Source: Trichosphaerium sp. ATCC 40318 (Eukaryota > Protista > Tubulinea). From it: a stretch of 64,000 nucleotides of DNA. Position 1 is the first letter of the stretch; each line of letters starts with the position of its first letter. Below the pieces are notes generated by a model. That model saw only the letters and a list, made by a program, of their open reading frames with translations. It did no database searches and was not told the DNA's origin. Below, piece after piece: positions 3,031-48,293 of this stretch. The stretch spans positions 434,001 through 498,000 of the forward strand of contig JALMLS010000578.1 in NCBI GenBank assembly GCA_038496445.1, given 5' to 3'. Position numbers and translations under genes: made by a program.

Positions 3031-3658
3031 ATGTCAATAAAAGAAGCTACACCGCTTCAAGAGCTACCACCAGAGACATTAACACATATATTGAGTTATT
3101 TAAACAAAATTCAACGTATTAGAGCTTCTACAGTATCTCATCTTTTCAATAACATCATCCGTTGTAATATTGGTTTCGATAACATTATTCTAAAAAAGAA
3201 ACCAGATTTCAGAAATATCTAAGGAAGTCCTCTGCTCAACAACACTAACATTGTTGTTTGGCCATTGAAACTTTCAAAAAAAAGACTTAGAATGCTTATT
3301 TGGAGTTCATACTATAGATTTTGCATACACACAGATCACAGATAATGATATACTCTTACTAACACAAGGAGGAAACCACAACATTCATAGCATTAACTTG
3401 GACTCCACATATATTACTGATATCTCATTAAAGGCACTCAAAGGTGTTCACACACTTGATGTTTCCAGGTGTTCTATTACCAATACAGGTTTAAAACATT
3501 TAGTAAACCTTGAGCATCTTAAACTTTCTTATTGTCCTGCAATTACAAGTGATTGTTTCAAACACTTGAAGTTTCTCAAATCAATATCAATCAAGGGAGA
3601 AAACACAAAGATTAGACGAGAAGATGTCGAAGCATTAGGTATTTCTTGGAACGTATAG
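3031..3658 (+). pseudogene. F-box + GVHT-type leucine-rich repeat gene, disrupted
   Basis: F-box LQELPPETLTHILSYL; in-frame TAA at 3220-3222; a frameshift at an A8 run near 3276-3283; then LRRs (GVHTIDF, GVHTLDVSRCSITNTG); no introns. Confidence 0.7.
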
Positions 3659-4830
3659 AAACGTGTAAAATGTTTGTTCTTATTGCAACATAGCATTTGT
3701 AAGCAATAAAATATATACAATTAGCCAGAAGAATACAATCAACTCCAGCAAGTGCTTTAACGCCTTCATCTGTCACAATAGTGCTTGTAAGATTTATGGT
3801 GTGAACTCCAGCAAGTGCTATTATACCTTCATCTGTCACTTTAGTGCTCATAAGACTAATGGTGTGAACTCCAGCAAGTGCTTTTACGCCTTTATCTGTC
3901 GCACATGTATTATCAAGATCAATTGTATGAACTCCAGCAAGCGCTGCAATACCCTTATCAGTTATGAAACAACAATCAGCCAGATTAATGGTATGAACTC
4001 CAGCAAGTGCTTTTATGCCTTTATCGGTCACATTAGTACTCATAAGATTAATGGTGTGAACTCCAACAAGCGCCTTAATGCCTTTGTCTTTCACATGTGT
4101 ATTACTAAGATCAATAGTATGCACTCCAGCAAGCGCTTTTATACCAATATCTGTTATGTAAGTACACTGACTCAGATTAATGGTGTGAACTCCAGCAAGC
4201 GTTGTAATACCTTTGTCTGTCACACGTGTATATGTGAGATCAACTGTATGAACCCCAGCAAGTGCCGCAATACCCTTATCTGTAATCTTTCTACAACTAG
4301 CCAGATTAATGTTATGAACTCCAGCTAGTGCTTTTATACCCTCATCTGTTACAAAAGTGTGCGCAAGACTAATTGTATGAACTCCAGCAAGAGCTGTGAT
4401 ACCGTCATCTCTAATACCCTCACAACCTCCAAGATTGATGGTATGAACTCCAGCAAGCGCTTGTATGCCTTCATCTGTCACTTGAGTCTGTATAAGACTA
4501 ATGGTATGAACTCCAACAAGCGATTTGATATCTTTATCTAGTACTCCACTGTAATCAAGATCAATAGCATGGACTCCAGCGAACAAGCTAACAAACCTTG
4601 AAGGAATAGAATGAGAAAGCTTAATTTTTGTGTTCTTCAACGAACTACTGTGTTCAAGTAACAATTTTACTCCTCTGGTATCTTGAATTGTTACTCTTGT
4701 ATATCCAACAATATCGTGAATAATAGAGGCGAAGGAATGACATGTCTGGCAAACCGCAAATCGAGCTTTTTTGTTGTAAACCGAAATATATAAACTATTA
4801 TCTCCATCGGCATGTCCAACAGACTCGTTT
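3612..4830 (-). pseudogene. F-box + ~14 LRRs (AGVHTI(N/D/S)L...TD(K/E)GI(K/A)AL), frameshifted within the F-box
   Basis: The 350-aa LRR frame extends upstream to YNKKARFAVCQTCHSFASII. The F-box start SLLDMPMEIIVYIF is in another frame (1-nt loss near 4779). Intronless. Could be a sequencing indel. Confidence 0.7.
3740..4580 (-). repeat. Coding tandem repeat, 63/66-nt units (21/22-aa LRR)
   Basis: Recurrent gaactccagcaag...atc units on the + strand. Confidence 0.9.
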
Positions 4831-5830: not shown

Positions 5831-8800
5831 TTACATCTCTGCTGCATTCTCAGGTTTCATCCAGTGCATCATAGTGAGTGTGAGTTGGTTCATCTCATCA
5901 ATCTCTAATTCTTCCTTCTTTTCGTTTCTAAGGTGCCGATATATATCCTCTTCCCAATCAAGTATGAAAGAGTTTGTAGGTATAGCAGGTAGCGTAGGCA
6001 TTATAGACTCAGCTTCTTTAGGATCTCTAAGCTTTGGGTCGTTTAATGCCTCAGCATAGTAAAAACGCTTATCACGATCAACTTCTTCTTCAAACATCTT
6101 AACCTTATTTCTGAACCACATTTTTTCAGCGTAAGTTCTACCATCCATAGCCTTATCAAGTCCTACAAAAAAAAAATCGTAAGAAAACGATTTGTAACAA
6201 GAAAAAAAAAAAAAAACAAAAAAGTTTCAAAACGCACCTCTGACATCACCATGGCAAACACGTAATAAGGTATATTCATCAAATAGAGAAGTAACATAAC
6301 GGTGATCAGTCTCGTGTGGGTGGTAGTTGTATCTAAAAGAGAAAGGTTAGTAAGAAGAAAAAGAAAACAAGTCGAAACGAAGAAGAAAAGAAAAAAAAAA
6401 AAAAAAACATACCTTTGGATCAAACGCTGATAAGCATGTTCAACGTTATCCCAAGTACCAAGCTTGAAACACAAACGAAGTATACGACGTGAAAAGAAAG
6501 CAGGGTCATCAAGAACTCCAAGTTCGCCGTCAAAGCCTCGTACCATCAAGTCATACTGGTCAAGAACATGCCATAAATCATCATGAGGCTCAGCAGTTTC
6601 CATATTAAACTTCTCTGCGAGTGCCGAGTCTACAGCCATTCTGTCAACACTTAAGTCTTCTTCAAGATCCTTTCCGTGGTTTGCTGTACTAACAGGTTCC
6701 GGAAGAATTGGTACTTCTCCTTCTTCTTCATATATTCTATCAACTTCAGCTTCGATTGCTTTTCTAGCAGCCTCTTTTCCTTCGTGTGTACCGACGATAG
6801 ACTTATCTTGTTTTATAGTCAAAGGTCTCAGACTTGCCATAGACTCATCAACAAGATCTTGGTGACTCTCTAAATAAAGAGACTCTCCTCCAAACTTAAG
6901 AAACTTCTTAGCATGGGCTGTGTTGTTAGGATCTAACTCAGCCTTCTTGTCACCGTCTTCAGGTTCGAAATCTTCATCACCGTAGTAGCTATCATCGAGT
7001 TCTTCACCTTCTTGTAAGCTGCTCTCAAACTCTCCTTCGCCTTCTTCGTCCATCATATCTTGCTCATTTTCTCTCTCTTCAAAACCCAGTTCTGACTCTT
7101 CTTCATCATCTTCTTCGACTTCAACTTCTTCAATCCTAGAAGTAAGTCTTCTTCTAATATCGTTCTTTCTCTTCTTCATATAATCAAGACAATTCGCTAC
7201 ATATTCATCCATAGCTTGGGTAGGTTCAGGTTCTGTTGGAGGAAGAGTAGTCCACTGATCTTGAACATCAGTATCCGGATCAAGTAATGGTGTATCCATA
7301 ACTAGTGGGTTGATACCTTTCTCCACCCACTCAGCCAAGTCATCAGCTGGAAGTACGAGACCAAGTGGAACAGGACCGTCATCAAGTTCTTTCTGAGCAA
7401 TACCATAATCAGGATCATCTTCATCCATATACCTTTCAATACCGTCATAAGTTTCCTCATCATGAACATCATCTTCATCTTCATAAATTTCTTCATCAAG
7501 ATCTTGTTGATTAAAGATAGTATCATCTACATCTCCTATTTCTAGGACAACATCTTCATCATCAGCAAGAACAGGCTCAGGCTCATCATCATCAATAAGA
7601 TCGATTGTATCATCTTCGTCTTCATACTCTAAAGCTTCTTTTCTAGCATCTGCTTCATCTTGACGGTATTCACTTGCAAGTCTGTTGTTCGCAGGGTTTT
7701 TAAAGTCGTAGAAAGGATCTTCTACCTTTGAGAGAAATCCAATATCATAGTCACTCATCTCATCTTCAGGTTCGTCAATTTTGAATTCCTCGTCGAGTTC
7801 ACGTTGTTCGTTTTCGTCGAGTTTTAAGTCATCATATATTGTCTCAGGATCAAAGTCAAACTCAGCTACGACTTGATCGCCTTTATCTTGTTCTAGATCA
7901 TCATCTTCATCAATAGCTTCGTCCTCTGCAACAACAATACCATCTTCCTCGTCTTCGTTTTTCAGTAATTCGTTAACGCTCTTAGACCTCATAACTTCTT
8001 CTTCGATCTTATCAAGGAGTCCGTCATATTCGTCGTAATCTTCGTCTAATCCGTCGATACCACTCGTAGGAAGAGAGAGTGTACCATCATTTGAAGAAAG
8101 TAACTTGTCATCCTCGTCTTCAATTTCGACGTCATCAATATTATCAACGTCTTGGAAATTTATCTTTGGTGTAGCTTCAGGAGATTGATACTCGTCTTTC
8201 AACTCATAAATGTTCTCAGAATCGCCTTCCTTTGTATGAAATTCAATAAAAGGTGGGTCATTGACTTCACTTGGAACACCATCGATATCAGCCTCTAAAG
8301 CCTTAACAATGTCTCTTAATGCTTCAGGACTCTTAGGAGGTTCTGGAATATCAAGTCCCAAGTGATTAACTGAAGCATCAAGTTTGTCACCCATTTCTTC
8401 ATCAGGATCAAATTCTTCACCACAACCAAAGATATCGTTTTCTTCGTCATCTTCTTCATCGAAAGCCTCCTTCGCCTCAATACCGCGAACACCAAGCTCA
8501 GCATTCAATTCAATACCAGCGTCTTCAACGGCCTCAAGAGCCTGAGCAGCTTTTGCTTTCTTTATTTCCACATGCATATGAGGTATAGCGGAAATTCTAC
8601 TCTCAAGTGCAGCAACGTGATCATTAAGTTGAATAGGACGATTAGCCATTGTTTCGTTAACAAAAGCTTCGTTGCTTAGCCAGTATGAAGTAGGAAGAAT
8701 TCCTTTTTCGATCTTTTCTTCATACTCTCCGTAATCCATGTTCATTACGATCTGAGCAACAGCAGTAGAAGCTTGGATCGCATGTCGGCGTAGGTAATCT

Positions 8801-11800
8801 TCTTCACCACCATGTATCCATTGAATAGTACTATTAAGTAATTTCATTAGCACAGGCAGAGAAAGTAAACCAATAAAGAAACGAAAAAAAAAAAAAAGAC
8901 GAAAAAAACGCTTTCTTCCAAAAAATCCATCTACTCGAATAATACGCGTAAAAAATTAAAACTACGCGTAGATGAATTATTTCGCGTAGCCATCTATCAA
9001 ATCTTCGGAATTTTCTTGAACTTTTTTAAAGAAAAAAGCAAAAAAATCATTTTTGCGATGAACGTACTTTCTGTAGGCTTCTGGTAGCATTGCTTCGTCT
9101 TCAGCAGATATTCTAGACATAGCCCATTGAGTATCAGGCTGTTGTTCGTTATAACTTTCGTTCTCACGGACTGCTTCATACAGATCTCTTTCTTCTGAAC
9201 CAAGTTTACCCTTTGGCATCAAGTCGGTTATTCTATACTCTTCGCCTGTGTACTGAGGCATAGAAGCCATGAGAGGGCTGTTCTCCATACCATCGGTACC
9301 CAAGACCTCTCGGGCAGCTTTTTTCGTGTAAGGAGACAAAAAGATACCTTCACCAAGCTCTTGTTCGTTCATAGCATCTAAAGCTTCTGGTTCTTCGAAA
9401 GCAGCGTTATTACGAGCGTAAACATCAGGGTGATCCTCATAGAGTTCTGTGAGCGGTTGGTCTCCCAAGTCTATGCTTCCTTCAAAGTAATCTGGGTCAT
9501 CCTTCATATCTGTAATCATTTGATCCATTATAACATTAACTGGATCTTCATTATAGAATTGTTGTTCAGTATCAACAAAGTCTTCATTATCAGTCTCCTC
9601 AACACCCTCAAGAAGGTCCTAGAAATAAGAAAAACAACTATTAGTACTTGAAAAACGTGAAAGAAACAAAACAAACAAAAAAAACAAAAAAATTCTTCGA
9701 AACCTTTCAGAAAAAAAAAGAACGTACTGGACTCTCAAGAGTCTCTACAGACTCAATAGCTTGGGCATACTGTTCACGAGCAAACTCGTATTGCTCTAGG
9801 TTCGTCATATCCTTTTTCATCCTTTTAAAAGCGCTATCAAAATGTTTAAACATCTTATGCTGTTTTTTTCCGGCATATTTAGGATCATCTGGATGATAAT
9901 CTGGATCAAGCTCATCAGGTAAAGGAATAGGACCATTCAATCTCTGAGGATCAGGGTCTTGTTTATGATGAACAAGACGCTTATTAAGCTCTTCCATCTC
10001 CTCTTTAATCTTCATCTGGTTCTCCTTTGTAGGGTTCTCAAAACGCTTTCTTATGACTTGAATTAAGTCAAGAGTTTGGTGAATATATTTCTCATTCTCC
10101 TCAATAGATGGATCCTTAAGACGGTTAAGCTTATCAGCCTCATTCAGTCTTAACATATCCTTTTGAGGCTTCAAAGCAATCTTTCCAAAGTAGTATGTAT
10201 CATAGAGGTAGAAAGCGGCCTCACCCCATTTTCCATTATAACCAGTTAAAAAGGTTATGAAAAATGATCCGAGGGCTTCACGATCTTGGAAGATTTCGTC
10301 CTTTGGTTGACCACCACGGATCATGTACGTCCTGAAAAGCTGGAAGATTTGCTCTGCGTGAGCTTCTCTCTTTGCTAGTGATCTAAATCGAATGTATAAG
10401 CATAACTCAAACTAGACAAAACAGAAAACGAAGTTGAGGTTTTTTTCCTTTTTTCTTCAAAAAATGAAGTAAAGCGTACTTCAGCATTAACGATGTTTCA
10501 AGCGTATTAACACCATAGTACGCATCATCATTATCAAGATCACACATTTCTTTAAAGAAACGATCAGCGTATCGCTTAATATCGGAGTAAAATATAGTGA
10601 TATCCAACTCCTACAAAAACATAGTAAGCAAACTAAAAAATTCCAAGATTTTTTTGTGCGTATTAATAAGACGTACAGTATCATTACCCTCAATTGCATA
10701 AGGATCATCTTCTTCAAGAATGTCTATCTCATCTTCTTCGCAATGGAAGTTGTACTCATCAAGGGTTTCAACTACATCAATGAGATGAGCTACAAGACGA
10801 CACATTGCACCACCGCGAACAGCAGGTGGGTAAATCTAAAAAAAGAAACATCAACAAACAACGAACACCCAACAATAACAGCAAAATATCGTACGTCGTT
10901 ATCGACATAGAATTTAATAGCTTCGACATCAGGAGCGCTCTGGAATTGCTTCTAACAGAAAAAGTCAATAATCATCGAAGAGAAAAAGAGGATAAAAGAA
11001 AAAAAAAACTCAAAAAAACAAAAACCAAGATAAACTCTCTTCAGAACTCAAAATCTAATGCCTTGTGGCATCAAGTTGATATCTGGATGCCTCAAGGTTT
11101 TACATGTGCATGACGTAGTAAAATAAAAGAGTAAATTGGAGAAGAAGAAAAGGAGAAAACGAAGAAAAAAGCTTACGTGGAGCAAAGACCTGAAAAAGTC
11201 AACATCAGATAAGTGAGCCAAGTGAGAATTAAAACGTTGCTGAGAAAGCTCGTTTTTCTCTTTCTTTGCCATCTCAACATTATCTACAATCTCTTCTTGC
11301 ATTAGCCTATCATCTGCAAATGATCTTCGAGTAGAGTTATCTCCAAGATAGTGTCTCTCGCGCTCCATTGCCTCATCGAGATATTGACGTGTTTTGGCTT
11401 GTTCCTCAGGTGTATCGCCACCTGCATTAATAATTTCTATATAAATGTAAGTTAAACAGTTCGTTGCAACAAACAAGAAGAAGAACAAAAAAAAAACTCA
11501 CCTTCAAGTTTCTCTTCAGACATGAGAGATAAAGGTTTGTATCCAACTTCAATAGGATCTATTTTCTGATCTAGAGCCTTATCACGGAGCTCAGGGTCGA
11601 GGTAATTAAACCTTAGCTCTTGATCAAGTTCAGCAGTAATTCTGTCAATCTCTTCCTCTTCCTCTTTTGTAAGAGTTTCATTTTCTCCTAAAACAACACT
11701 GTCAACAACTGTAAAGGAACGGAAGAGAGAAAATCAAAAAAAAAAATAAAAAAAATGAAAATCCTCTTACCAGTTTCTGCAGCGCCAACATGTTTAGAGA

Positions 11801-14800
11801 TTTCATCTATAGCATGCTCTCTGGCGAAATTCAAATCATCGACTCTCTTTCTAGTTGCAATCTCAATATCTCTTTCTTCAAGAGACATAACTCTGTCTAC
11901 TTCGTTAGTACTAATAATACGCTCTCCAGCTTCTTCACCGAGTTCATGCTATAAAAAGGAACCTCCAGTGAGTAATACGTTCGGAGAGAGAGAAAAAAGG
12001 AACAAAAAAGAACTTACAGTTATAGCAATTCTAGCTTCAGCTGCTTGTTGGCTTTTAACCTCAAGATTGTCTTTGAGCGTTTGCTTGGTATCAAGTAGTT
12101 CTACACTACCATCTGGGTTTCTGAACTTCATCTTCTCAGGTAAATAACCTGAAGAAGCAGCAAGACTCATTGCAAGATCTTCATCAAGTTGTTCCTTGTC
12201 CTCAGGATTTTCCTTTTGAAAAAAAAAATTAGCAAAAAAAAAAAACTTCGAGAAAAAAACAAAAAAATGTTTAACGACGACATACAGCTGCAGCGACACC
12301 AGATTCTCTGTACATGTTCCAAAGTATCTCGTATTTCTCTGCAGATGTGAGAGGCTTAGCATCCTATTTAAAAAGCAAGGTCAGTACACCATACACAAAG
12401 AAAAAATCTGTTTGTTTCACATTTCATATTTCTTGTATCAACGCCGATCGTACCTTTGACTTTTCAGCAAATATCCTGATGTGATCACCTTCTTCTGGGT
12501 CTTCCATAAAACGTAGTGTTTTCTCAAGGTCTTCAGGAGTAGAGATATCACCCAAATTCTTCATGAGGTCACTCTGCTTAGCGTACTTTACGCGATATCC
12601 AGCCTTAGGTAAGTTTCTAACAATAGCTTCGTTATCCATTACGGCGGTTTGTTTAGCTTCGAATGCATCAAGTTTAGATTGTAAGAACGTTTCACCAGCC
12701 TCATCTCTATCTAATTGGTCAGGATCGTTAACCCTTTTTTGAATAAACTCCAAGAGTTTCTGTTCGGTATAAGAAAACTCATCATCCTCAACAGGTTCCG
12801 GAGCAGATGTTTTCTGTTTCTCAAGCTCAGCTGCATGTAATTCTGCAAGGACTTTTTCAATCTTCTCAGGAGCCATGCCTTTAGCACGGTACTAAACAAA
12901 TAAAGGTTAGTACGACAACCAAAAGGAGAAAAAACAAGCACAAAACCAAAAAAAAAAAAAGAAAACAACGAAAGAAAGAAAAAAAGAAAAAAAAAGAAAC
13001 TTATTATGTACCTTCTCTGCGAGAACCTCCTCTTGGTAAACATCACGAACACGAAGCTCTTGTATTGTTGTTTCATCATGTACTTGTTGAACAATACGAG
13101 CCTCTTCATCAGGAAGACGTTTAACAAAGTTATCAATTTCTTTATCATAAACTGCTCTTTCCTCTTTTTCAAGCTTTTCTTCCTCTTCGTTTGTAACAAC
13201 TCGTCTTTCTTTAATCTCTTCAGACTTCATTTGGTTCGTAATAATAGAATCAATGAGCAACGTTGATAGTGTTGTGCTTTGTTCATGTGCAGTTATAATA
13301 TCTACATTCTCTTTACCTTCAAGTTCAGATAGGATTTCCATTTGTCTCTCGTTAAAAACAAACATTTCTCCGCGCATTATAGCCGCTTTAAAAGATTGAA
13401 ACGAGTTTCTGCTTGGTTCATAGTGTGCGACATCTGTGCCCTCACCAATATAATACTGTTGTAATGCTCTTTGCCTGTATTGTGGCTCATTATTCTTGGC
13501 AATCTCTGCAGCAGCCTTAAGATCAGTCAAAGGTCCTGCAAGACCTTTTACGAATGCTGTTTGTTTAGACATGATAGTAGGTTGTATTTTAATGCGAGCT
13601 TTCTCATCCAAATCGCTAGTATCAGCTAGCCTTGGATCAGCAATATCTTTTTCCATAGCTTCCTGTTCTTCTACTCCGATAGTATCAACATCATCATCAT
13701 CAAGTTGTACTTCAGTGAGCGTAGTGCTTTCGCTGCCTTCAGTTGATTGCAGAGTACTTTCTTCTGTGCCTTTAGCTGATGTAGAAACACCAACAGAGCC
13801 AAGAGCAGCTACAGGTTCCTCTATAGCCGCAACAGGGTTATCCTTAGATACGGAAGGAATGTCACCACTAGGATTTAGTGCCTGGGTTTCATCTACAGAT
13901 ATGTATCAGTAAAACGAAGGGAAAAAAAAACCAACAACATTTTTGAAAGAAAAACAAAAAATAACGTACCGACTGGTGCAAACTTTTCTGGATTTGCGAT
14001 ACGTTCTTGGTGTTGCTTGTAATACAACATTTGTATATTAGCACGTCTTTCAATTAATTCCCACTCTTCAGGAGTATAATCCTTTGCATTTAGAAGGACA
14101 TCTCTAGGATGAGCAACAAGTTTGACGTCTAGAAAGAGAAAAAAAGTAAGCACAAAGTCAAACCAAAGAAAAAGAAAAAAGAAAAGAAATAAAAGCAAAG
14201 AAAAGATGAACGTACTGTTCTTCTGGTATAGTATCCTGTTACCAAAAGCGTCTTGCTTGTATTTCGGCTCAGCACCTTCAAGGAAATCATCAAGACTGAG
14301 AGGTTCAACCTTATCAATGATTTCTTGATCTTCAGGCATAGAACGATCTCTAACAGCCTGAGTAGAGTCTACATAAGAAATAGAAGACTTCTTCAAACTC
14401 AAGTCCGTTGTGTTCACTTCTGGTCGCTTCTTTGGTGTGCCCTCAAAAGCTCCAACATCACCAAGTAGCTTTTGTGTATTAACATGCTCATCATAAAGCT
14501 CTTCCCACAAAGCTTGTTCTCTTTCCTCAGGATCTGCATCTTCTTTTACGAATTGCTCTTCAGCCAATTGAATAGCAATATGCTCTTGAGGTTTGCCTTT
14601 GTTCTCAATACCTTTGAGTGCCTTCTTAAGAAGACCATTCAGAATCTTCTTCCTTATTGATGATAACTTAGAGTTCTTTAATTCCTCGGTAGCATAATCG
14701 CGAAGTTCTTCGCTAGTCATAATCTTATAATCGGTACCAACAAGAACTCGATGTGTATCACTATAAATATACTTTGTAGTTCCTCTATCGAAGTGAATAC

Positions 14801-17800
14801 CAGCGCGTTTAGCAGTAACTTTAGGCATACTAACTGGCGCCGCATCTTCATGAACAACGCTCTCAATAGTCTTACCGACATGACGTAATTGTGAAGCAGT
14901 AGGTGGATTTGAAACATCGATGATATCGCGAATTGTTTTTTGTTCCAAAGCGCTTAAACCATCTTCATTGACAACATCTTGGTCAAATATAGTTTGATCG
15001 TCTTCTTCATTCTCTTGGAGATCATTCTCTTCACCAGGAACCTCTTCATCATCAAATCCGGCGAACTTATTGACTTCTCTCTCCATGTCATCGCACACTT
15101 CTTTTAATTGCTTGTACTTGTCTGAATCAAGTTCACCTGAATCTTCCATATCCTTAAGTTCCTTCTGAACCTTAGAGAACTCGCCAACAAGCTTAGCATG
15201 TTCCTTTTTCTTCAACTTATACTCAGGAGTATGTATACTCAATGATTCAAGTAGTTCTGGGTCTTCTACTGTATACTTTCCTTGTCTAATGGCTCTAGCA
15301 AGAAGTTTATCATTATGCTTATAATTCTCTCTGAAAAATCGAGGTTCTGTAAGAACAGGATGCATCTTATCTTTCTTATCGCGCCAATACGCTTCAACCT
15401 TACGTTGCGTATCAGACGTTATATCAGAGACTAAGCATCCTTTCCTCTCAGCTTCTTCTTCATAAGCTTTATTCCTCTCTAGCTCGTCCAAGTACTTATC
15501 AATACCGATACGTAAATCCATGTACTCTTCAAGTTGATCAGTCAAAAACTCGGTATCAGATGATACCATCTTATCAGCAGGTACGAGTTCTCTTTGTCGT
15601 TGTATTATATTAATAGCCTTTCCGTAATCCTCAGACATAACAGCTGCATGCATAGCTTGGAATGAGAGCGATGCGTTACGTATAGCAGCAGGTGTTTGGT
15701 CAAAGAGTTCGACAATATCGTCATAATCCATAACTAGGCTATCCAAGTTCTCCATAGGTTTAATCTCTTCAGGGAAAGCCATACCCCTCGAGTTATCAAC
15801 GTTCTTTAGGAAAAGCTCAATCTGCTCCTGAGCAAGGACATGCTCTCTAATGACACCTGAATCCATCTCTGTAGAATCAGGAAGACCGTCAAGTTGATAA
15901 GCGGGCAGGTTTGCTATAAAAAAAGATATTGTTAGAACTTAGTTCGAAAAAAAGAAAAAAAAAAGAGCGAGCCAGCAAAAAAAAAGTCTTTTGGACTTAC
16001 GATCATCTGGTTCGAAAACAACACGTTGTGGTGTTTCATCATAATATTCGGCTTCGCCTTCTTCGTTTTCTTCTTCTTCATTTTCGGCGAAATCGACTTC
16101 ATCGAGCTCAACAACAGGTTCATTGGACTCAACTGCTGTATCAGCCGTTTCAGCGGAATCAATTGCTGTGTCTGCCGTTTCAGCGGACTCAATTGCTGCG
16201 TCAGCCGTTTCAGCAAGAGATATCTCGTGATCTTCATCTTCTTCATCAAAGATTTCTTCATCAAAGATTTCTTCGCTAGGAGCTACCTGGTTTGAAATTA
16301 CCTCAGTAGCCTCAACAAGGTTCATATCAGGTTTTTCTACAGTGTTATGGAGACGTCTAAAATAAACAGTAAGAAAAAGAAGAAAAACAGAAAATAAATC
16401 GACAAAATAATCCAAAAAAAAAGAAAAAAAAGATAAACGGAAGAAAATAAAGTAAAACCACGTACGGATATAAACCTGCATCTGGACCAACATGTTTTGT
16501 CTTTTCGAATGATTCTATCAACTCTTGTTCAGTTTGTCTAAGAAACAAAAAATAAGATTAAAGTGACTACAACTCGCGAGAAGAGTAAAAGATGAAAAAA
16601 TTTAGAAGAAGAAAAAAACTTACGGATAGTCGCTTTCTCCGTGTTTACGAACAAAGGCACGAATTGTGGCTTTTGGATCTTTGCCAAGGTGTACACCAAC
16701 AACATCTCTTGCCTCATCAGGATTCGGTAGCTTGTGTAATGGAGTTGATTCGCGAATTGCTTTACCTTCAGCAATAGCACGTTGTAGAACTTCACGAGCT
16801 TCCTTGCTTTCAAAAACAACATCATCTTCAAAGAGATCTTCAGGAACAATATCAGAAGGAATCTTTGCGGCTCCCTTGAGCTGTATTGGCTTTCTATTAC
16901 TCTCAATCATATTCGAGATAATCTCAGCATCAGGGTCGAGAATTTCTGGGTCTTGATTTGCTTCAACAACATTGCGCCTTGGTCCTTTCGCAAGGTCAGC
17001 TTTTTTTGCCTCCACCTTCTCTTTCATGACAGCATCGTATCCGATTGTTTTACTTGAGTGACTCGCAAAGTCGCTCTTCTGAAGTACAGACTCGACACAC
17101 TCTGGATCGTTTGCTTCTTGTTCCAGAACACGTTTAATAACACCTTCATCGACCTTGAAAGTATTACGCTTTTCGAATTCCATACGAGCCTCTTCAACAA
17201 TAAACTTCTCTGCTGTCTTCCTCGTTTGAATGAACAACTTGTATAGCTCTTCCATTGATTTAGGACGCTCTTGTTCATGCTCATAGCGTTTATATTCGGT
17301 TGCAACTGTTCTAAACTCTTCAGGAGTAAGTTCCTCGCTTGCAGCCTTGTTAAGGATTCGCTTAATCTCAGCGACTTCTTGTGTCTTGCCGTCCTTCTCA
17401 TGTCCAGCAATAATATCGCCCATAGCATCTTTCATTTTCTTACTGTGAAGCTCAGGAACAAAGAGGTTTTTGACAACAGATTGTTCATCAAGAGGCAAGT
17501 TTTGTCCACGTTTATGTTGTTCCATCAACAAAGATAATGCGTCTTCTCTTCCTGAAGTGATTATAGCTTCTTCTTCTTCATTAAGCTTTCCATCACGATA
17601 GACACGATCACATAGTTTAAGTAGATCAGCAGACTTTGTCTTATCACCTGCATCGCTTGCCATTTTGCTTAAAGTACGCAAAACAACAACACGTTCATTC
17701 TTCTCGCTCTCTTTACCCAATAAAGCAGAAGCCATAGCACGTGTAGTCATCTCCTTCAACTGAGCTTTCTTCTCAGCGAAAAAGTTTCGTTGTAATCTAT

Positions 17801-19607
17801 TTTCAATCTGAATATCAAGCTCTACTTTTGGTATAGCTTCAACACGTTGTTTCCTGTATTCAGATAGAATCATAGCACCATCTTCAGTAACAGCTTGAGG
17901 GTTTCCTTCCTTGCTAAGGTAATCAAGCTCCATAAGCTCACCATCTCGGTCTTTGTCATACTCGAGCTGACCTGCAATGTCATAGTTTGATGCAAATTTA
18001 CCAGTACTCTTATCGACACCAGTAACACCTCTTTCCATGAGGGCTTGAACCTCGAGCTCTGTGGCTAAGCCTTGGTCCACGAGCGAATCTGATACATCTC
18101 GTTCCTGTTCGTATATTCTAACATTTCTTGGGTCCATAGCTGGATCACGGTAACTGCCGTGTTTATCGTAGAATTCTTCAAGTTTTACGAGTTCATCAAA
18201 GAGTTCTGGGTATTTTTCTTTGTTCATGTTAGGTCGAGCTAGAACACGTTCTTCTGGAGTCATAGAATCTCTATGTTTCTTTTTCTGTATAACAGGAGCC
18301 TTCACATCTGGATGTTTAGCGAGAAGAGCTTCTTCGCGCTGACTTTCTTTTTTGTCGAGTAACTCGTAGTACTCCATCTTTCTATCGAACTTCTTACCTA
18401 GATATAACGGTTAGAAAGATCAATACGCAAGAAAAATAAAGAAAATCAATAAAAACTCGCTGATTTTGTTTTATAGCGTTGGTTTTTGTAGTATGAGCGC
18501 AAGCGCATTCAATAGAATAGTTTTGCGCTATCAGAAACGCGTTCAAAGGCATTCATAAAAATAATTTTTTTTGAAATTAAAAAGCGCGTACGCATTGCCG
18601 CATAAGCTGCAATTTCTTGTTTTTCGCCTAACTCGTCTTCATCGAAGTGCTCGCCAATCTCCTCTTCGTATCCGACTTCATCCAAATCATCATCGTCTAA
18701 CTCGTCTAACTCGTCTATAGGCTCAAGCTCGTTGTCCTGGCCTTCTTCGTTGTTGTCGTATAACGAATCTATAGCAGCGCCAAAACCAGCTGATTCATTT
18801 GTGTCACCAGTAGCGATTCCAGAAGGTGTATCAAACAGATCCTGGTGCAAAACGTAAGAAAGTAGAACCAAACAAAGAAAATTCTTTCTGAAGACTCTTT
18901 CTATCCAAAATACGCTCAAAAGAGTGGAAATTGGTAGAGATAGAGAGTTATTGAGCGAAAAGAAGCAAAAAAAAAAAAAAAAGGCGCATTCGAACGTACC
19001 ACTTCTTCTGGTGCTGAACCTAGTTGGGTTGCTGCGTCTTGTGAAAGCATATCCATATCATGCTCTGGAGGAGGTGTGTATGATGATACAAAATTTGTTT
19101 TTGGTTTGACTTTCACTTCAGGCTGTTTGTACTGTCCCAAGTCTCTACGTTCGGAGGCTTGCATAAAGTTTGATGCGTCACCAAACGCAGAAGTGACGAC
19201 TGGCCGCTTTGGTTGCTTCTTTTCGATCTTGCGTTGTTTTTTCGCTTTAACGAACTGTTGGAGGTCCTTAATAGTGGCAGACGGCTTGGTTGCGTGTAAG
19301 GTTGGAGCTTGTTCCTGTTCTGGCTCCTCCTCTTGCTCTACGGTCTCTGGTTCTTGCTCTTTCTTAGCTCCAGGCGTGAAATTTTTGAGCTTGGAGAAAA
19401 AGTCGCTCATAAAGCCAGACTTCTTTCCATCATCCTAGATTATCGTGTAAGAGCGTGGAAGCGAAACTTGGTCGTACTTTGGTTGCGTAGTGGCGATTGT
19501 GTATCCGTTGCGCCTTGGGGCGTACGCTAGCCCCTTGGCTCTTTTGTAGTGTGACTGCGCGCACTAACTTTGGGTTAGAACTAAAAACTATAATCTACCG
19601 TACGCAT
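5831..19607 (-). CDS. Giant (~3,800 aa) highly acidic orphan protein with a predicted mitochondrial presequence; about 23 introns
   Basis: The minus-strand ORF blocks join in frame across canonical GT-AG U-rich introns (most junctions checked). N-terminus MRT|CAVTLQKSQGASVRPKAQRIHNRHYATK|DDGKK; ends MMHWMKPENAAEM*. The start exon is less certain. Confidence 0.8.
16124..16276 (-). repeat. Short coding tandem repeats (AETADxAxxS x3; EEIFD x2 plus a partial copy) in the giant gene
   Basis: 30-nt and 15-nt direct repeats are visible in the DNA. Confidence 0.8.
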
Positions 19608-20212
19608 GGTTTATAAGTCTCAGTACTCCCTAGAATAAGGGAAACAGAAGCACAGAGATTTAAAAATTTGCTACCCGCTAAAAACACAATTAATAACGCG
19701 TAAATCGTAATTCTTTCTACCTGCGACAGCTTGAGTTCAGCCCTTTCGATATTGGCCCTGGTCAAGTAGAGTCAGGAAAACAGAAAAAAAAGTGGAAAAT
19801 TTACGAAGACAAAGCGCGCATGGTTTTTTTTTAGCCAACGACACCACTTTAGAGTGTATCGTCAGTGCGTTCAAGTATTCAAGCACTAGTGCAGTATTTA
19901 GCATCAACAAGCTGCTTATTTGCTTCGTCCGCGTTTGTCCGGCAGTTATGTGGCGATCACGCAGTAGTGACAACAGGAACACAGGTTTTGACAACTTTGA
20001 AGTTGTGGACGTTTCAGTCGCTACTGTATGTGGCCTTTCGCACTATGTAGCAAGCGTTTAACGCCAAAAAGAACTCACTAGTTAACTTTAAGACTTTTAC
20101 GAGCGCGCCTTCTATTCTGAGTGAGACTATCTACGTATTCATCGTTTTAAAGTACCTACCATTCACAAAGCGGAAAATTGTCACTTGTTCAACTTCAGTT
20201 TTATTGGTTTCC

Positions 20213-23200
20213 ATGACACCCACGTTAGCTGTTAAATCAGTATTAATACTATTACTCATCAATGTTGTTTGGGTACGTCAGAAAATAGCTAAAAGCATTT
20301 TTTGTAAACTCTTTTTGTTCCTTTTACAACCTTGCATACAATCCACGCTTGTTGTAATAGTGATGATCGCTTCCTAAAAACACACGTGATTAACATTTCA
20401 TGTAAAACAAGATAAACTAGGCTTATTCCAATCTACTATGCGTTTTTTCGTCTCAAATCGAGTGTTTCAGCAATGTTGTATGTTATTTATTGTTTATTCA
20501 TTGGTAGTAGGTTACTTTGGCTCAAGTCCCTTCAATTGCGCCGGTAGATACTCCATCAGCACCAATAGAACCAACTACGAATAGTACAATGCCAATTTCT
20601 CCTGTCTTTCCAACTACGAGCCCTGCAAGCGTATTGCCAGCGGCTCCATCGGCACCAGTCTCACCTTCTATGGCTCCTAGTGAACCTATCACACCTTCTG
20701 CTCCTACTACCTCGTCGCCTGTTGTCCCAGGAGAACCAATCACTCCAGCTTCTACCACTGTTCCTACACAATCTCCAAGCGAACCTATTATCCCAGCGGC
20801 GCCAGCGTCACCTGTCACTCCAGTGGAGCCAATCACACCTATCTCTCCTACTATACCAACAGAGCCTCCGTCGCAACCTACCAGCCCATTTGTTCCATCT
20901 ATTCCGCCTCCAGAGACACTGCATTGCTACATTTCTCCAACTGGATCATTCCTTGTACGCACTTCCAATTGTTGAGTACAATTAAATGTCTTTAGAATAA
21001 CGGTACCAAAGAATCTCCAAAGTTCTATATAGGAGACTGTGTAAAGACAATAGATAGTTCGCCAACACAGAAGACTTTTATCATTCACGTAGAAGGTAAG
21101 AGGACATACAATAAAACTCTTGTATTAGGGTGTATCAACAATTTCTTTAACTTTTTCTTTTGACAGGTGGTGTCTACAACTACACCAACACAAACTCTGC
21201 TCCTGTTAGTAGTCTTAATCTCATAGAGTTAATAATACAATCACAAGAAGTTGGTTCACAGAGACCTATATTCCAAGGCAAACGAGGTCTGGTAAGCATA
21301 GAAACGTACATAACAGAAACCAAATTGTTGCTGATTTATTATTATCTAGCATCTTTGTTTTGAACGATATGGATTTCCTCTTGTCTTTCAGAACATAGAA
21401 ATAAATATATTTAATCTATGTAGTACTAGTTCTGGTAGTATGGGTAAAGACACTTCAATCAACATCACTAATTGCGTAATCAATGAACGTTCGTACATTG
21501 AATTTTCCTTTTTTCTTTCTTAACTTTCGTTTAAGTGCAAATCGAGACTAATTTCCTCAAACTGTTGCATATCGAGAATTCTGAACTAAGTGGATCACTT
21601 ACATCAAGCACCGCGAAGTCCGATGCGATCATTATGAGTAACGTCAATACAAACAATGCACGCTTGGGTAAGTAATTGAGTTTTTTTCTTGATGTGTTTT
21701 TGATGTTTTATTTAGTTCAGAGTGTTGAAAACGTAGTATTCAATGACTGTAAGATAAACAATTCTACTATTACTCTCTCACAAGCTAACTGTATGTATTT
21801 GACTCGCATGGTATACCTCTAACAGTATTTACAGCGACCACGTTCCACTCAAATACCTTCACAAATTCTTCATTACAAGTAAGCTCTAAAGGAATAACTA
21901 TTGAGGAATGTACTTTTGATTCATTTGGTCCAAGTTCTTCTGTACGACATGTATTATATTCAGTCGATTATCTAACTTAAAAATTAAAGCCAGTACTTGC
22001 TGTTTCACAAATGGTTAAACTTTCAATCATAGATACAATGTTTCAAAACAACACGTACAAAATTTTGTCTAAAGTTTCCGTTTAAATTTGTTTTCTCTCT
22101 TTTTTCTTCGTTTATCTTCGTTCACTTATTTCCCTTGCTAGGCTATCTGCTATTAAAAACCAACAGACATTCTTCTCTACAGTAATGATTGATGGAAAAT
22201 TCTTTGGTAACCCAAGTAATAACAGTGCAATGATTGTTGGATGTAATTTTATAGATAACTTTATTGAATATAATGGAGAGCTCCATAGCGTTCCACCAAT
22301 AGGATCAAATGGTAAAAACATGGATTGGCCCAATGGAAGTGATGTATCTATACAAGTTACACCAACACCAAGTATACACAGAAGCTTGAAAACCAACTAC
22401 TAAAACGTTTGTCTTAGGTTGTGTTCCAGGAACAAGTGAACGCTTTTTGAATCAGTCTTGCCTTGTTTGCCCTGGTGGAACCGCTTCCTCAAATGGTACA
22501 AAGTGTATTGATTGCTCAGAAGGGCATTACTCCATAGAAGGTGCATCAATGTGTGATCCGTGCCCAATCGGACAATTCCAGAACGCAACGAAAGTATCCA
22601 GATTAGCTACTATTTCTTAGTATATTAACGCCTTGTAGTGGACAGACAACGTGCAACAAATGCGGTCCAGATCAAATAGCGCCTAATAATGCATCTGTTT
22701 CATGTACTCTATGTGAAGCAGGATATTTTACTACATCTAAAATATATTGTGTTGCATGCCCTGCTGGTGCGTTTCGTTGAATTTAGTTTATGAGTCCTTC
22801 ATTTCTTTTTATTTCAAATTTGACTGTTCAGAAGGTTTCCATTTTTAATTTTTTGTTATCGTGTGATTAGCTACGTGTACTATCCCATCTTGTGAGGGTA
22901 GATTGTAAAAAAAGTGGAAAAAAGAAAGGCGCTGTTTTCGAACTTCTTTTTTTTTTTGTTGGACTTTTCATTCTGGAAAGAAATTAGTGGTTTTACTGAT
23001 TGTATTTTAAGGATCTATGAAAAGAAGCGATAATGAATTATGTGTAAAATGTGACTGGTATGAAAATTCAAAAGAAGCATCAGTTGTATGTCACTGTACG
23101 TTACAAAACAAAAGAAGAGATGTGTAATTTTTCTTACTTTGTGTAGTTGGAAGCCCTCTTTTTTATGGTTTGGTTAGCGCATTTGTGGTTCTCCTTTCAC

Positions 23201-46420: not shown

Positions 46421-48293
<1,873 letters not shown>

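Follow-up and report, generated by a model that had tools for sequence, protein, structure and literature searches.

Between 5.8 and 19.6 kb of a 64,000-nt stretch of the Trichosphaerium sp. ATCC 40318 genome (contig JALMLS010000578.1, positions 434,001 to 498,000; hereafter the window), the minus strand carries a long run of open reading frames (ORFs) that raises two questions: are these frames parts of one giant gene, and where in the cell would its very acidic product act? We find that they are one real, transcribed nuclear gene of 24 exons, whose mRNA starts upstream of 19741 and whose coding sequence (CDS) specifies 3,822 amino acids. The N-terminal leader of the predicted product is, by composition and motif, of the mitochondrial presequence type, and we consider below how far this leader might account for the fate of the protein behind it.

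One transcribed gene of 24 exons

The minus-strand open frames are parted by T-rich stretches that start with GTA(C/A)G and end with YAG. We built the gene model with a junction-by-junction scan, with a dynamic programme that sets codon log-odds against intron composition and includes splice scores, and with correction by RNA. The gene runs on the minus strand from 19607 to 5831, with its ATG at 19607-19605 and its TAA stop at 5833-5831. Every one of the 23 CDS introns is GT-AG, with lengths from 40 to 237 nt, and 13 of them have a GTACG donor; the joined CDS of 11,469 nt is a single frame. The preliminary description of this locus, which was made from the letters of the DNA, had proposed one giant spliced gene for a protein of ~3,800 amino acids rich in Asp and Glu, and our model agrees with it in kind and in both end coordinates.

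Transcription and splicing are directly observed over the first ten exons. RNA contigs of two runs, X1 and X2, were placed on 13850-19849, and they skip the stretches 13893-13969, 15914-16000, 16357-16465, 16538-16623 and 18398-18591, as well as 18842-18999, 19435-19477, 19564-19603 and 19678-19720. The skipped stretches end in CT..AC on the plus strand, which is GT..AG on the minus strand, and they are therefore introns spliced out of a minus-strand transcript. Among exons 1-10, the sole intron for which no joint is listed is the one that separates exons 8 and 9 (14129-14215), a repeat at that place having been skipped; it is backed by X1 and X2 contigs that end exactly at 14128, and by a 295-nt X1 contig whose length equals 95 + 159 + 41 nt of exons 8, 9 and 10. 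Where contigs overlap, they link exons 1 to 4, 4 to 5, 5 to 6 to 7, 7 to 8, and 8 to 9 to 10. The 14 junctions from the donor of exon 10 to exon 24 were picked by the codon/splice dynamic programme; they are canonical and keep the frame, so that exons 11-24 stand on computation, that is, on canonical splice signals, frame continuity and a codon-usage signal in each exon. The transcribed unit and the exons of the body are listed here, and the features of the N-terminal region are given with the leader.

5831..19741, minus strand: transcribed unit as far as seen; an X1 RNA contig reaches 19741, and the stop is at 5833-5831
18592..18841, minus strand: exon 4, 37% Asp plus Glu (D+E); seen in RNA
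16624..18397, minus strand: exon 5, 591 codons, nearly all helical by prediction; seen in RNA
16466..16537, minus strand: exon 6, a 72-nt mini-exon; joints 16537/16624 and 16356/16466 in both X1 and X2
16001..16356, minus strand: exon 7, 37% D+E; seen in RNA
14216..15913, minus strand: exon 8, 566 codons; seen in RNA
13970..14128, minus strand: exon 9; X1 and X2 contig ends at 14128 and the arithmetic of the 295-nt X1 contig
13012..13892, minus strand: exon 10; joint 13892/13970 in RNA, donor at 13011 computed only
12454..12891, minus strand: exon 11; computed only
12286..12363, minus strand: exon 12, a 78-nt mini-exon; computed only
12018..12212, minus strand: exon 13; computed only
11771..11948, minus strand: exon 14; computed only
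11502..11708, minus strand: exon 15; computed only
11177..11436, minus strand: exon 16; computed only
10895..10951, minus strand: exon 17, a 57-nt mini-exon; computed only
10677..10835, minus strand: exon 18, onset of a more hydrophobic middle island; computed only
10480..10610, minus strand: exon 19; computed only
9728..10382, minus strand: exon 20, which carries the island AEQIFQLFRTYMIRGG; computed; all-helical in AlphaFold
9068..9618, minus strand: exon 21; computed only
6413..8830, minus strand: exon 22, 806 codons, 31% D+E, with a more hydrophobic island at each end, of which the C-terminal one includes FFSRRILRLCFKLGTWDNVEHAYQRL; computed
6238..6332, minus strand: exon 23, a mini-exon of 95 nt whose donor is GTGCG; computed only
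5831..6162, minus strand: exon 24, closed by the TAA stop at 5833-5831; computed

Two or more genes might have been chained in frame by chance, for example with exons 11-24 as a separate transcript, as the junctions below 13012 come from computation. Such chaining is highly improbable, since all 14 computed junctions keep the frame and are GT-AG, accompanied by pyrimidine tracts and by motifs that resemble branch points. The longest intron is 237 nt, compared to ~0.8-1.2 kb of flanking intergenic space, and there is thus no space for an intergenic gap inside the gene. Codon usage is uniform along the gene; the frame of the model scores best in 23 of the 24 exons, far above chance, the exception being the 28-codon leader exon 2. 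Moreover, X1 contains 56% of the words sampled from 10000-19900, as expected if the entire stretch is exonic RNA.

Some alternatives to parts of the model were tried and rejected. The dynamic programme proposed an extra 3′ exon at 5599-5488, reached from a GTAAAG donor at 5834, but the donor is weak, the stretch is an A-rich part of the 3′ untranslated region (UTR), and the score came only from Lys codons. The first intron as computed (19598..19555) was dropped for the RNA-supported 19603..19564. A greedy choice of the acceptor giving the longest ORF missed mini-exons 6, 12, 17 and 23, and was hence abandoned.

The RNA contigs also differ from the window at 25 single bases of the CDS, and these differences bear on coding constraint. 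Seventeen are synonymous and eight non-synonymous, while only 21% of random changes are expected to be synonymous (binomial P about 4e-7), and this excess shows that the coding sequence is under purifying selection. Within exon 8, 11 of the 13 allelic differences are synonymous, the remaining two being D1257E and a stop at Q1317. Within the repeat-bearing exon 7, all four differences alter the residue, which indicates that this exon is freer to change than are exons 5 and 8. The change at codon 1317 (position 14942) is found in one contig of a further run, X4, as G>A on the plus strand, which turns CAA (Gln) into TAA in the coding sense; X1 does not have it. The X4 contig has a depth of about 6 there and the site lies 79 letters from the contig end, and the stop could reflect either an error of sequencing or, in that sample, a null allele.

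The N-terminal leader

The features of the N-terminal region are as follows.

19678..19720, minus strand: 5′UTR intron of 43 nt, GT..AG; joint 19677/19721 in an X1 contig
19604..19607, minus strand: CDS part of exon 1 (ATG plus C), with an in-frame TAA two codons 5′
19478..19563, minus strand: exon 2, leader residues 2-30 (L RAVTLQKSQGASVRPKAQRIHNRHYATK); RNA joints 19563/19604 and 19433/19477
19489-19484, minus strand: predicted MPP/Icp55 site R25-H26-Y27/A28, within exon 2
19000..19434, minus strand: exon 3, seen in RNA; a second in-frame ATG (M39) at 19410
about 19198-19254, minus strand: basic cluster KAKKQRKIEKKQPKRP, resembling a nuclear localization signal (NLS), in exon 3; the sole strong basic cluster

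The spliced mRNA reads ...TAA ACC ATG C/TG CGC GCA GTC..., with ATGC/GTACGG as the first donor, and a spliced RNA contig shows that two tiny introns (40 and 43 nt) bring ATG 19607 in frame with the large body. This ATG is the first AUG of the known leader RNA and has A at -3; the 91 nt of 5′UTR that are known contain no further ATG. The start codon is parted from the remaining CDS by an intron placed after ATGC. Three very short introns (43, 40 and 43 nt) are grouped at the 5′ end of the gene (19435-19720, minus strand), and the 21 remaining introns are 59-237 nt long. A 6-codon upstream ORF (ATG CGC GCT TTG TCT TCG TAA; 19801-19821, minus strand) lies ~60 nt 5′ of the last RNA-contig base at 19741, and its inclusion in the mRNA hinges on where transcription starts.

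The leader opens with M-L-R-A-V-T-L-Q-K and closes with N-R-H-Y-A-T-K, after which the protein continues DDGKKSGF-MSDFF.... Its 30 residues include seven Lys or Arg, two His and no Asp or Glu, whereas each of the 3,161 other 30-residue windows along the protein contains at least one acidic residue. The sequence R25-H26-Y27/A28 corresponds to an R-3 motif, in which MPP cleavage is followed by that of Icp55. Presequences occupy the N-terminal 20-60 residues, abound in basic residues, Arg among them, with hardly any acidic ones, and are cleaved at R-2, R-3 or R-10 MPP motifs (PMC7723863); the leader matches these rules in length and composition. Judged in this way, the leader that begins at ATG 19607 is presequence-type, and it stands at the true N-terminus of the predicted product.

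The preliminary description had likened an acid-free leader with an R-x-Y/A end to that of COQ5 in the same window, and this likeness is upheld, for a leader whose reading frame opens at the first AUG of the mRNA. The N-terminus that it quoted was right for the rest of the leader (...SQGASVRPKAQRIHNRHYATK) and wrong at the start, which is MLRAVTLQK... and not MRTCAVTLQK..., because the first donor had been misplaced by one codon. The COQ5 homologue, a COQ5/UbiE-type methyltransferase (~46436-46699, plus strand; PF01209, E 4e-12), serves as an in-genome reference for presequence style, with a leader of about 45 residues and a cut mark before ST. Both leaders have an ML(A)R start, are acid-free and rich in Lys/Arg, Ser/Thr and Ala, and finish with R-(x)-Y, then Ser or Ala, then Thr; their lengths before the cut are similar, at about 24-27 residues. 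They differ in what they precede: COQ5 is a conserved enzyme of the 30-kDa class that is mitochondrial in other eukaryotes, whereas the leader described here is encoded on its own mini-exons and heads an unrelated 438-kDa orphan.

Translation might instead start effectively at M39; the 38 codons that open with the upstream ATG would then form a 5′ leader whose frame matches by chance, or would be used in a minor isoform only. There is some reason to entertain this: codon usage gives no signal in any frame of exon 2, whose GC content is an atypical 57%; the upstream frame reaches a stop at 19432 when unspliced, and would meet a stop if the 43-nt intron 19477-19435 were retained; and the proportions of isoforms are beyond what the contigs show. 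However, the sole RNA contig over this region is spliced in frame, and position -3 is A at the first AUG but T at M39. By chance, an upstream ATG would be in frame and open across 38 codons with a probability of ~0.035, and 30 codons would be free of acidic residues with a probability of ~0.14. We consider a start at M39 rather improbable.

The protein body and its lack of recognizable relatives

The 3,822-residue product has a mass of 437.9 kDa, with 920 D+E compared to 462 Lys plus Arg, a net charge of -458 and an isoelectric point (pI) of about 4.2. Asp and Glu make up 24% of its residues (Glu 13.9%, Asp 10.1%), followed by Leu (8.2%), Ala (7.4%) and Lys (7.3%), while Trp (0.4%) and Cys (0.3%) are rare; hydrophobic residues account for ~28%. 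No transmembrane or stop-transfer segment is found along the protein, the highest Kyte-Doolittle mean over 19 residues being 1.08. The protein is not a low-complexity expansion. BLASTP reveals no similarity between or within exons (E ≤ 0.01), and the CDS has only three short tandem repeats: 30 nt x3 at 16125-16214 (SAETADxAIE-like units) and 15 nt x2.4 at 16239-16274 (EEIFD) in exon 7, and 9 nt x2.8 at 18693-18717 (LDE units) in exon 4. Acidic-aromatic and DPF/DPW linear motifs are not notably enriched in the protein, which has a mild excess of DP and PE only.

Structure prediction makes the protein largely alpha-helical but yields no confident compact fold. AlphaFold models of exons 5 and 20, made without an alignment, are helical nearly throughout, at a predicted local distance difference test (pLDDT) score of 50-54 (mean 53.6 for exon 20) and a predicted template-modelling score of 0.24-0.46; these pLDDT values are too low for a meaningful fold search. 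By a proxy based on hydropathy and charge, exons 8, 10 and 18-20 and the two ends of exon 22 contain islands that look more ordered. The two helical islands that had been quoted beforehand are both present in the model as written.

Relatives were sought exon by exon, with word searches bounded by length, so that ~1,360 of the 3,822 residues (exons 5, 8 and 200 residues of exon 22) were covered in large protein collections. In Pfam, no exon of at least 20 residues gives anything near threshold, and no mitochondrial domain of any kind is found among these exons. An exhaustive phmmer search with exon 5 (590 residues) against 1.84 billion representatives returned no match at E ≤ 0.001, and the word search returned none for exon 5, exon 8 or the first 200 residues of exon 22. 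There was likewise no match for exon 8 in a scan of Joint Genome Institute (JGI) metagenomes, for exons 20 and 8 in the ESM Atlas, or for exons 5, 8, 10, 20, 22 and 24 among PDB sequences. The rest of the 64-kb window has no paralogue, and a literature search for giant acidic mitochondrial proteins yielded nothing relevant. The term orphan, which the preliminary description had used, holds within the limits of these searches, and the giant protein would be lineage-restricted.

Two ORFs bound the gene. Immediately downstream, at 3612-4664 on the minus strand, is a 350-aa ORF that is leucine-rich-repeat-like, with repeats of about 24 residues (...ALAGVHTINL..TDxGIxALAGVHTI.L...). Upstream, at 20517-20975 on the plus strand, is a divergent, mucin-like ORF rich in Pro, Thr, Ser and Ala (PITPSAPTTSSPVVPGEPITP), which would share with the giant gene a common upstream region of ~780 nt.

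Destination of the protein and comparison with known systems

We give about an even chance to the reading that the giant protein is a lineage-restricted, soluble, helical polyanion that is mitochondrial by virtue of its presequence-type leader. Residues 1-27 would then be bound as a presequence by TOM and TIM23, MPP would cut after R25-H26, an Icp55-type peptidase would trim Y27, and a soluble polyanionic helical protein would thereby be delivered to the matrix. Once there, it would most plausibly act passively, as a polyanion or scaffold that either provides a counter-ion or chaperone for basic partners such as mitoribosomal and nucleoid proteins or binds polyamines and divalent cations; that it is an enzyme is less likely. 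More tentatively still, and with clearly less confidence than in the mitochondrial assignment as such, the imported protein would be by far the largest and most negative presequence substrate known, a soluble, helical 435-kDa matrix polyanion confined to this amoeba lineage that serves as bulk counter-ion or scaffold for mitoribosomal or nucleoid proteins or for cations.

Several considerations weigh against a mitochondrial fate, and they are best judged together with the main alternative, in which the same gene model encodes a polyanion of the nucleus, nucleolus or cytosol that might, for instance, bind histones or further basic proteins. The targeting claim is drawn from composition and motif, and the function proposed for the body from composition. 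Presequences are also expected to form a positively charged amphiphilic helix; the amphiphilicity of the leader is modest, with a maximal hydrophobic moment of 0.51 over 11 residues and 0.29 over 18, and G12 and P17 lie inside it; its exon is the one without a codon-usage signal. The second in-frame ATG could yield a leaderless isoform, the three 5′ joints depend on one contig of one run, and the junctions of exons 11-24 are computed, the RNA check covering exons 1-10. A precursor of 438 kDa and charge -458, which is unfavourable for import, would to our knowledge exceed by far the size of every presequence substrate characterised to date, and acidic segments would have to enter against the inner-membrane potential. 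The NLS-like cluster KAKKQRKIEKKQPKRP lies ~60 residues past the leader, and Pfam recognizes no mitochondrial domain on the exons of at least 20 residues.

The extreme size and charge, together with the NLS-like cluster, thus speak for a possible non-mitochondrial fate. We regard such a fate as somewhat unlikely; the N-terminus would in that case be just a basic leader, or would contribute to a signal for the nucleus or nucleolus, perhaps with dual targeting. Set against it are the uniqueness of the leader, the sole acid-free 30-residue window in 3,822 residues, and its close mirroring of the COQ5 presequence of the same genome, from the ML-R start to the R-3 motif at its end.

The two outcomes differ in what the gene would mean. 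If the leader works, the giant protein would test the size and charge limits of import through TOM and TIM23, and would point to a polyanionic, lineage-specific component in mitochondria of the amoebozoan type. Should the leader fail, the gene is another large orphan of a poorly sampled protist, under purifying selection and without a recognizable domain. Either way, a start codon parted by an intron and a leader on its own mini-exon present a predicted targeting signal as an exon module.

Three known systems offer comparisons for the body. The helical islands had been described as PPR/TPR-like, and amphipathic helix pairs such as LRLCFKLGTWDNVEHAYQRL do resemble a single PPR-type hairpin by eye. 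However, PPR/TPR likeness, and with it that part of the preliminary description, is not supported: the giant protein has no Pfam PPR or TPR match at E ≤ 1 on the exons of at least 20 residues, no tandem or other internal repetition of this kind, and no confident repeat fold, with helical models that are of low confidence only (exon 20 pLDDT 53.6).

A second comparison is with polyanionic cation buffers of the calsequestrin type. By analogy, the high D+E content of the giant protein could bind divalent cations with low affinity and high capacity. The giant protein differs in being without thioredoxin-like domains and without similarity in Pfam or the PDB for the exons searched. Calsequestrin itself has a signal peptide rather than a presequence and resides in the endoplasmic or sarcoplasmic reticulum.

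The third comparison is with p32/C1QBP/Mam33, a presequence-bearing, very acidic (pI about 4), soluble family of the mitochondrial matrix that is thought to act on basic partners by way of its negative surface. The giant protein shows no sequence relation to it: no MAM33 domain is matched by Pfam on the exons of at least 20 residues, and no PDB sequence is matched by exons 5, 8, 10, 20, 22 and 24. The architectures also differ, since p32 is a compact trimer of ~30-kDa subunits, while the giant protein is ~15x larger, helical and without a confident fold. Nevertheless, the giant protein, like p32, is predicted to be soluble and very acidic and to carry a presequence-type leader.

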